64,000 nt of DNA from Diadema antillarum (lineage: Eukaryota). The notes below the pieces were generated by a model. It saw nothing but the letters and a program-made list of their open reading frames with translations, did not search any database and was not told the DNA's origin. Made by a program: the position numbers and the translations under genes. Below, in pieces: positions 33,080 through 35,987 of the stretch (within the stretch, counting starts at the first letter, position 1; each line of letters starts with the position of its first letter). The DNA is taken from contig NW_027270897.1 of NCBI RefSeq assembly GCF_040938485.1, forward strand, positions 3,100,001 to 3,164,000, written 5' to 3'.

Positions 33080-33217
33080 ATGAGTTTGACACAGTGGTTA
33101 GGTCGATCAGCTGTCGTCACTGGGGCAGCATCGGGCTTCGGGGAGGCTATTACCAAAGCCTTGGCCAGACTCGGTATGAGGGTTTTGGCCACGGACAACA
33201 ACAGGGCATCTCTCCAG
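33080..33217 (+). CDS. DHRS11: DHRS11-like SDR coding exon 1, copy A (MSLTQWLGRSAVVTGAASGFGEAITKALARLGMRVLATDNNRASLQ)
   Basis: ATG, Rossmann TGxxxGxG motif, 46 codons, phase-0 donor CAG/GTAAGA. Confidence 0.85.
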
Positions 33218-33646
33218 GTAAGATTCGCAACCGCTGCTGGTCCGAGGGGCTGCCACTGCTGTATGCTCAAGTTCTTAAATGGTATGCAAATTACTCGTTC
33301 ACTTGATAGCGTGGGGATAGTCTAAACCTGTCGATGGCTAGCTCTGAACAGGACAGTAAGAAAAGAGTTGACAGCAATGGGTGGTCAATAGGTCCCCAAT
33401 ATGTCAATAGAAAAAGGTTTATTGATACATTCAAATTGCCAAATGATGAAATGGATACTCTCCGAAGTGTCAATGGACAGACCATTCTGGTCACCTGGTC
33501 TACGCAAGTTCATCCATTGTTTGAACATGATTGACGAATTCAATAAATTTGATTGTTACCTGTAGGGCAAGCTTATGCATTTTGTTACTTCGAAAACGAG
33601 TGAAGTGCCTAACCAACTCAGAAAAAAAAAGTCATGTGTACCTATG

Positions 33647-33820
33647 CAGTGGCGGATCCAGAGGGGGTGCACCCGGCGCACGCCCCCCCCCCTTATTTTT
33701 CGTTAAAAAAAACCCAAAAGAAATAAAAAGAAAAAATGAAATGAATTGCGGAAGTGGCACCAGAAATATTAGTTTGTTGCGCCCCCCCCCCCCTTTACTG
33801 AATTCCTGGATCCGCCTCTG
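33647..33820. mobile_element. hAT-like MITE CAGTGGCGGATCCAG...CTGGATCCGCCTCTG with 6-bp TSD CCTATG
   Basis: 15-bp TIR (1 mismatch); CCTATG at 33641-33646 and 33821-33826. Confidence 0.85.
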
Positions 33821-35849
33821 CCTATGTGCCATGAGCTAACTCCGAAATGGCTTACAGACCAATTCGATTTCGGTATACTGTTTTTTATAGTAATTTCTAA
33901 CTGGGGGTTTACAAGTATACCCAACAAAGGATCATTTATGCACTGACATAGCAACGCACAACGCACCTGGCTCATTGCATAACCATTGAAAATACTTTTG
34001 TTCTTCTTTGGATGCCCCCCACTTATGGCAGCCATAGTTGCAGTGTTCTGAAGTCAGACCCATCTGTATTATGGCGTGCCATGGTTGATGTCTTTCTAAC
34101 GGACGCCATCATGTGTATGCATTGCATCCTCTCTGTGTTGATGCAAGGAATTGGGGTACAAAGCTTTGGAGCTAATCTCCACTCAATGATCAAGTTATAA
34201 GTACAGTAATTGTAAAAGAAAGAGAAAGCAAAATACATCGCAAAAACAAAAGCGACTGTCTTTTTCTCGAAAGAAGTTTATTGATTGGACATGTTTTCAA
34301 GTGGTGATAAATTATACAAGTTACATGAGGAAACGTCATCTTCTCATAACTATCTCACCAAGAATTCAATAGTTCTCCCATAATTTGTACGATCTTACCG
34401 AGCTCTCCACTGTTGTCAGAATCTTTTCAAGAAGATCAATTTCAATTTCAATATACAGCTGAGGTTCTCTTTAATTGTGTTCACACCTGTGTGGCTGTAA
34501 GGTCTTTTAATGGAAAACTCTTCAATGGCATTTTTTTTTTCAAAGATCTTAGTCAACTACATGCAGGGAAAGAAAACGCAAGATACGATTGATAGTAAAT
34601 AATAACGATGATATTTCTGTTCCAACTCAACGTTTGACAACAGTCTTGCACTAAAACTCTTACAATCTAGCTCCCCCAAAGCCAAAGACATACATGTAAG
34701 TGTTCTACAATGTTTCGTTTTTCTGAGAATATGGAGAAACAGCAACGCTTTGCCGACAACTTCTAGACCAGGGATTCTTTTCTTAGAGTCGCGAGTTTAA
34801 CTTAACTGATAAGACTCCAGTAAGTTCTTAAAAATCGCAACAGAAGAAAGAACTTAAGAAACCAGTTTCCGGATTACAAAAACCATGACGCCACGTACAG
34901 ACATGGTCCATGTTCCTAGAAAGCAAGCAAATACAAATACTTACCCAAACCCAGCACGTTGGCTATACAGTACATACAAACACCGATTAAGTTTAAATCA
35001 ATGTTAATCCATGATATAAACGTAAGTCTGCGGACTGTAAAACAAGCGCGAAATATCGGCGCGTACATACCGAGGCATGCACATGCGCCTGATTTTATTG
35101 TGTGCGTTAAGTGTTGCATATCTGATTCTGTCGCCCTACGCGACGTGTTTGGAGCATTTAATCGAAATTTGCACAATCCGTCTACTAAATGTCAACTACC
35201 TTTGTATATTCCGGTCATTTGAGTCCATAATGTCACAGGGAACATCAGCTCAATTACATTTAGAGGGGTCGTACCTTGGTGGCAAGAACATCAAAAATAT
35301 CATGTGCACACTGAGATATCACATCTGTTTGATATTTACCAAATAAACAATACTGCTATACAATTATTGCATGTCTTGTGGAATCATATGCGACACTTTT
35401 TTTTTGTCAAATAACATATAATATCGAGGCATTTTATTGAACACCGACGAAGGAACAAAGTGAATGGCTAAGGTCTAGGTCCACTCTGATTATTACCGCT
35501 TGTCAATATGACTGGAGAGTTTACGGTATGCAATCGGTATGCCTCCGATCCAAAGTCCGTTTCTTTATACATGATAAAATGAGTGATTAAGATTATCTTT
35601 CCAGTAGCGATGGCTTTCTTGTCGTAAACTACGTATGTACACTACTTTTTTGCAGAGATTACTACAATATCCAACTTACATAACAATTGTTTAACTGCTA
35701 TCAAAATACAATTCAGGAAATTACAACCTTTTATAGTGGCAAAGGGGGCGAACGCGTTTCGTTGACCCTGGATAGCGGCCTCATATGACACATCACAAAA
35801 TGTTCATTCAGATGTTGCCATTCCACGACAGCAGTAGCGTCAAGTCATC

Positions 35850-35987
35850 ATGGACCTATCAAAATGGAAGGGCCGTGTGGCTCTGGTAACCGGGGCTGGT
35901 TCAGGCTTCGGGGAGGCAATCACGAACCTCTTGGCCAAATTAGGCATGAAGATACTGGCTGCTGATATCAACATAGATTACCTGAAG
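35850..35987 (+). CDS. DHRS11: DHRS11-like SDR coding exon 1, copy B (MDLSKWKGRVALVTGAGSGFGEAITNLLAKLGMKILAADINIDYLK)
   Basis: ATG, TGxxxGxG motif, 46 codons, phase-0 donor AAG/GTAATT. Confidence 0.88.

Follow-up and report, generated by a model that had tools for sequence, protein, structure and literature searches.

Can a single enzyme gene carry two interchangeable N-termini, and are both of them in use? This question is raised by a gene of the echinoid Diadema antillarum that encodes a DHRS11-like classical short-chain dehydrogenase (SDR) and has two homologous phase-0 first coding exons and one body. We analysed it within a 64,000-nt stretch of DNA (the window). Exon 1A (33080..33217, + strand) encodes an A-type N-terminus and ends in the donor CAG/gtaaga. 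Exon 1B (35850..35987, + strand) is the alternative first coding exon, with a B-type N-terminus and the donor AAG/gtaatt. Each exon is 138 nt (46 codons) long, starts with ATG and closes with a GT donor in phase 0, and the TGxxxGxG motif is present in both (TGAASGFG in 1A, TGAGSGFG in 1B). We observed that 28 of the 46 residues were identical (E = 1e-19, BLASTP); the other 18 lie in betaA, the Gly loop, alphaB, betaB and the first turn of alphaC. DNA similarity was confined to the coding part (33110-33203 vs 35880-35973, 71%), and none was seen between the flanks beyond it. The starts of the two exons are 2770 nt apart. These results bear out the original prediction of two intact 138-nt exons spaced by 2.8 kb, with the same count of identical residues, and its junctions, 33217>46377 and 35987>46377, fall exactly on exon borders.

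We then compared the exons with the SDR fold. Exon 1A matched positions 3-37 of the Pfam adh_short profile (PF00106) and exon 1B positions 1-35, both above the gathering score. Exon 2 picks up the profile at position 40, and therefore either first exon fits the body gaplessly. An AlphaFold model (pLDDT 95.6), based on 32 relatives, placed a strand at residues 10-14, a helix at 19-30, a strand at 34-39 and the start of a helix (42-54) in exon 1. This strand-helix-strand order agrees with the earlier assignment of exon 1 to betaA-alphaB-betaB of the Rossmann fold.

The body has six exons (46377-51404, + strand) with AG/GT borders throughout. Exon 2 (46377..46580) provides the common phase-0 acceptor for 1A and 1B. 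It is followed in the gene-body model by exon 3 (47221..47315), exon 4 with the catalytic Ser and YGATK (47879..48008), exon 5 with ISPGQGNT (48394..48477), exon 6 (49680..49745) and exon 7, which includes the stop codon (51366..51404). Motif scans and tblastn confirmed that this body is the only one in the window. The intron from 1A to exon 2 spans 13.2 kb, with 1B inside it, and that from 1B to exon 2 spans 10.4 kb. Both predicted enzymes have 251 residues. When the joined translations were matched directly against stored RefSeq proteins, 1A plus body was an exact match to XP_071485597.1 (P0167), and 1B plus body to XP_071494417.1/XP_071503821.1 (P0165).

Relatives were gathered by searching protein representatives with exon 2, which led to a Lytechinus protein (P0005) and from there to a 90%-identity cluster of Diadema proteins. 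The cluster bears the name 'dehydrogenase/reductase SDR family member 11-like' and contains D. antillarum and D. setosum sequences. Of the catalytic Asn-Ser-Tyr-Lys residues of classical SDRs, S146 and Y161 were invariant and N116 and K165 nearly invariant in a 32-sequence alignment (A1). The SDR NNAG motif after betaD was absent; Diadema and Lytechinus have QCAG instead, with A93 and G94 kept. QCAG is a motif variant compatible with classical SDR membership. The echinoid clade, from Diadema to Lytechinus, has QCAG for NNAG (residues ~91-94; exon 46377-46580) and PGQGNT for PGxVxT (residues ~193-198; exon 48394-48477), and judged by these motifs it is an unusual SDR subfamily.

To determine whether both exons are under selection, we compared them with a D. 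setosum locus (L030). In this locus, 1A (10001-10138) and an intact 1B (14327-14464; ATG, open frame, gtaatt donor) precede a single body, and collinearity with the window extends past both edges of the duplicated segment. Between the species, 1A differed at 5 of 138 nt (3 synonymous, 2 non-synonymous; dS 0.091, dN 0.020) and 1B at 7 of 138 nt (4 synonymous, 3 non-synonymous; dS 0.131, dN 0.029), so that the dN/dS of ~0.22 found for each exon rests on 5 and 7 substitutions, respectively. The body differed at 17 of 618 nt (dS 0.104, dN 0.004, dN/dS ~0.04). Nucleotide divergence was 4-5% in 1A and 1B compared to 13-20% in the flanks (binomial P for so few changes, 4e-6 to 2e-3), and sliding windows gave one conservation peak per first exon. 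Alignable intron blocks had 11-12% substitutions between the species, plus indels. Between D. antillarum haplotypes, we observed one synonymous change in the 138 nt of 1A compared to ~4% divergence in its flanks. Between 1A and 1B themselves, pS was 0.78 and pN 0.23. The synonymous sites are saturated; by these values the pair is old and has evolved under constraint. These data support purifying selection on both 1A and 1B, in line with that part of the original prediction.

We also assessed how many copies of these exons the whole assembly contains. Exon-by-exon searches found four copies of the body: one in the window (contig C9) and one each on C152, C318 and C694. Exon 1B was present in four copies with the same DNA in all, and 1A only on C9 and C152. 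C9 and C152 are the two haplotypes of one locus (locus A), and C318 and C694 are those of another (locus B). The original prediction had left room for a collapsed paralogue or a full second gene for 1A; no second body able to serve 1A was found in these genome-wide searches. Locus B is the second copy of a duplicated segment of the window (35758..53294) and contains 1B and the body without 1A (C318:926027-945662, C694:379505-402369). The duplicate is 17.6 kb long and is common to locus A from 35758 to ~53300. Homology between the loci breaks off sharply on the left, 92 nt 5' of the 1B ATG. On the right, the segment ends within an N run of the window (53295-53557); the assembly as published is said to be gap-free (PMC13511894), and the run was presumably masked on purpose.

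The D. antillarum assembly is described as uncollapsed, with allelic duplicates retained (PMC13511894). We observed 55 fixed differences between loci A and B in ~8.8 kb (~0.6%), with almost zero conflicting site patterns, and locus B is therefore a distinct, young copy. Its flanks are multi-copy repeats, the left family with ~90% identity and the right one very young (97-99%, >400 candidate copies). With ~0.6% divergence, compared to ~12% substitutions to D. setosum, locus B arose too recently to account for the conservation of 1B, and it cannot have preserved 1B by gene conversion since the species split.

We next examined the annotation for use of 1B. RefSeq models the 1A>E2 junction on both locus-A haplotypes (P0167 and P0156; C9 and C152) and in D. 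setosum (P0166). It models 1B>E2 only at locus B (P0165; C318 and C694), which has no 1A. RefSeq and the protein collection contained isoforms with 1B from neither locus A nor D. setosum. No transcript-derived Diadema proteins were found in the protein collection either (queries included 100 residues spanning the junction of 1B and E2). The one mRNA-like contig, assembled from another sample (P0154, 1035 nt), has an A-type N-terminus on a similar body. The D. antillarum annotation drew on 12 RNA-seq runs (PMC13511894). The 1B and E2 sequences are the same at loci A and B, and short reads therefore cannot tell the two loci apart. At locus A, 1B may be weakly expressed, restricted to a tissue or stage, or unused; we infer that it is in use.

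A candidate for the promoter and 5'UTR of 1B lies directly 5' of the exon, in a conserved non-coding block (35510..35849, + strand). Homology to D. setosum begins sharply at 35510. The sub-block 35510-35730 had ~95% identity compared to an intron background of 80-87%, and conservation was weaker from 35730 to the 1B ATG. The interval 35500-35757 was found only on C9 and C152 and is thus not a repeat. An Rfam scan of 31-53 kb gave zero matches.

Several other elements were observed around the two first exons. Haplotype C152 has ~1.1 kb of extra sequence (C152:3094795-3095923) ~400 nt 5' of the 1A ATG, at window position ~32681, and the alleles therefore differ in the putative 1A promoter region. 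Between 1A and 1B lies an element of 191 bp (33632-33822) that has poly-C/poly-G tracts and whose terminal inverted repeats are 22 nt long; it is present on C9 and missing from C152, and is thus a MITE-like insertion polymorphism. Downstream of 1B, the 10.4-kb intron that leads to exon 2 contains a degraded non-LTR retrotransposon on the minus strand (42682-44916; RVT_1, E = 3.8e-15; zf-RVT), which coincides with a strong GC skew at 42-46 kb.

We consider alternative first exons with one shared body the best explanation of this locus and, on balance, a probable one. A transcript starting upstream of 1A would splice 33217>46377 across the 13.2-kb intron that holds 1B. A transcript starting in the conserved block just 5' of 1B would splice 35987>46377. 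The two resulting 251-residue enzymes would have the same catalytic body and different N-terminal 46 residues. On this explanation 1B would be transcribed from its own promoter.

The locus could also be read with only 1A in use, 1B being an unexpressed intronic relic and the B-type enzyme coming solely from locus B, where an intact 1B-plus-body gene supplies it. Such a reading fits RefSeq, which lists 1B isoforms for neither locus A nor D. setosum despite an annotation aided by RNA-seq (PMC13511894). In D. setosum, however, 1B retains its start codon, reading frame, Gly motif and GT donor, which would not be expected of a relic, and it shows a dN of 0.029 against a dS of 0.13 amid flanks that diverge by 13-20%. 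Locus B (~0.6% diverged) cannot have maintained the exon, having arisen long after the species split, and a conserved single-copy block stands 5' of 1B. We regard a relic as unlikely, although it is the main rival reading.

Far less credible is the converse: 1A would be what remains of an upstream paralogue that was lost, its link to the body would exist in gene prediction alone, and the genuine first exon would be 1B. The junction 1A>E2 appears, however, in independent NCBI models for two species and for both haplotypes. Moreover, conservation of 1A is seen between species (dN/dS 0.22) as well as between haplotypes, the exon has a strong consensus donor, and the mRNA contig P0154 (1035 nt, another sample) joins an A-type N-terminus to such a body. 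These observations weigh against two that would suit a lost paralogue, namely that the A-type and B-type first exons of Lytechinus sit in separate complete genes and that the DNA homology of 1A and 1B is restricted to the coding part. An assembly artefact, with a collapsed or mis-joined paralogue making two genes look like one, might be suspected in an uncollapsed draft of about twice the haploid size (PMC13511894) in which multi-copy repeats bound locus B. The order 1A-1B-body recurs, however, on contigs of two haplotypes of D. antillarum and in D. setosum, whose assembly is at chromosome level, and whole-genome exon-by-exon searches yield no further body. We give this reading almost no credence.

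If both first exons are used, in what would the isoforms differ? The best solved relatives were human DHRS11 (1xg5, E = 1.8e-52) and an insect farnesol dehydrogenase (7w61, 3.2e-28). Both resemble the Diadema enzymes in their classical SDR fold, Ser-Tyr-Lys catalytic residues and similar length. In SDRs, an Asp at the end of betaB favours NAD(H) and a basic residue favours NADP(H). DHRS11 has 'CAR' after betaB, with an Arg that we take to be the NADP-type residue, and other D. antillarum paralogues keep 'CARN'. Opposite this motif we observed TDN in 1A and ADI in 1B, so that D39-N40 and D39-I40, respectively, face A-R. The Diadema enzymes thus differ from DHRS11 in having an NAD(H)-typical Asp in TDN/ADI for CAR, as well as QCAG and PGQGNT for NNAG and PGxVxT; their kinship with it is one of closest match and name.

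The original prediction had proposed, besides selection on both exons, that the isoforms might differ in cofactor affinity, expression or targeting. Selection was borne out; a switch of cofactor or targeting was not supported. A cofactor switch as the main reading was rejected: D39 and the Gly motif are kept in both 1A and 1B, and by SDR cofactor rules both isoforms would belong to one cofactor class. A targeting switch was also rejected: betaA is preceded by just 8-9 residues, and neither 1A nor 1B adds an N-terminal stretch that could act as a leader. The consistent A/B changes are conservative (R/K at 30 and 34, T/A at 38). Positions 17, 38, 40 and 42 adjoin the adenosine pocket, and differences near this pocket could give fine tuning of affinity only. 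We favour a difference chiefly of expression, driven by two promoters, and slight kinetic tuning. Biochemically, the consequence is probably modest because the catalytic body and the cofactor fingerprint are common to both isoforms.

We also traced the two exon types in other echinoids. In L. variegatus, the A-type N-terminus is encoded by one gene (P0152; CM031016.1) and the B-type by a tandem pair (P0151 and P0005; CM031015.1); each of the three genes has its own body and a single first exon. In L. pictus, one A-type gene was found. A relaxed tblastn search of Lytechinus introns and upstream regions for relic second first exons gave nothing convincing (one weak match, E = 0.21, ~700 nt 5' of P0151). 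Positions 27, 30, 34, 38 and 40 divide A from B across genera. In an exon-1 tree of 46 columns, to which two 44-residue outgroup sequences were added, the A-type clade spanned genera (support 89/87). A forced Diadema-only clade was rejected (p-AU 0.028), and a cross-genus B clade was not rejected (p 0.08). Phylogeny of the body gave the Diadema body no clear place as A-like or B-like. The ancestral state may have been one gene with both first exons or a pair of genes merged afterwards. Orthology of the A and B types across genera is thus moderately supported by the first exons.

Two of the related genes have unusual structures. P0151 (L032, CM031015.1) looks like a mosaic, with a first exon 93% like the one in P0005, its tandem neighbour, and a body 93% like that of the A-type gene, which lies on a different chromosome (L031, CM031016.1); exons 2-3 have ~95% DNA identity, and the introns are unalignable. 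This pattern suggests gene conversion or exchange of an exon module. In S. purpuratus, the model P0155 (XP_011666999.1) is missing its first exon and has a doubled exon 3-4 region, probably because an older annotation wrongly merged a tandem pair.

Because Lytechinus has separate A and B genes and D. antillarum recently copied '1B plus body', the family moves between a state with two first exons in one gene and a state with two genes. More tentatively, and as a possibility that we would not call probable, the A and B Rossmann modules may have been kept since before the split of Diadema and Lytechinus, as alternative first exons or as separate genes, with D. antillarum in mid-transition as an isoform is partitioned into a paralogue.

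The arrangement has parallels in known systems. In UGT1A and the clustered protocadherins, variable first exons with their own promoters are spliced to constant exons. The Diadema gene likewise has alternative first coding exons, each with a presumed promoter, and a shared body. Unlike those clusters, it has only two first exons, its promoters are putative, and the exons encode a cofactor-binding half-domain and not a substrate- or ligand-binding domain. A search of the literature for echinoid DHRS11-like genes found none. Among human tandem-duplicated exon substitutions, 40 of 236 are N-terminal, and most are ancient with conservative residue changes (PMC9741552). As in N-terminal events of this kind, for example that of tropomyosin, the Diadema exons are tandem and homologous, have equal length and phase, and can each join a common downstream exon. 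The pair is likewise ancient, its changes are mostly conservative, and purifying selection acts on both copies. Terminal events often involve a signal peptide, a coiled coil or a disordered terminus (PMC9741552); the Diadema pair, unlike these, swaps the core of a Rossmann fold, and its mutually exclusive use is putative. On structure and conservation, the locus is a real but ordinary case of this established N-terminal tandem exon class.

RefSeq treats the two products as separate genes, with no 1B isoform entered at locus A. Overall, the locus shows that two interchangeable exon modules can be maintained over a very long time for the cofactor-binding half of one Rossmann enzyme. The change from isoform to paralogue can be compared in three states, namely Diadema locus A, the young locus B and the separate genes of Lytechinus. 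If the tentative history given above is true, D. antillarum would show, while it is happening, how a splice isoform becomes partitioned into a paralogue.
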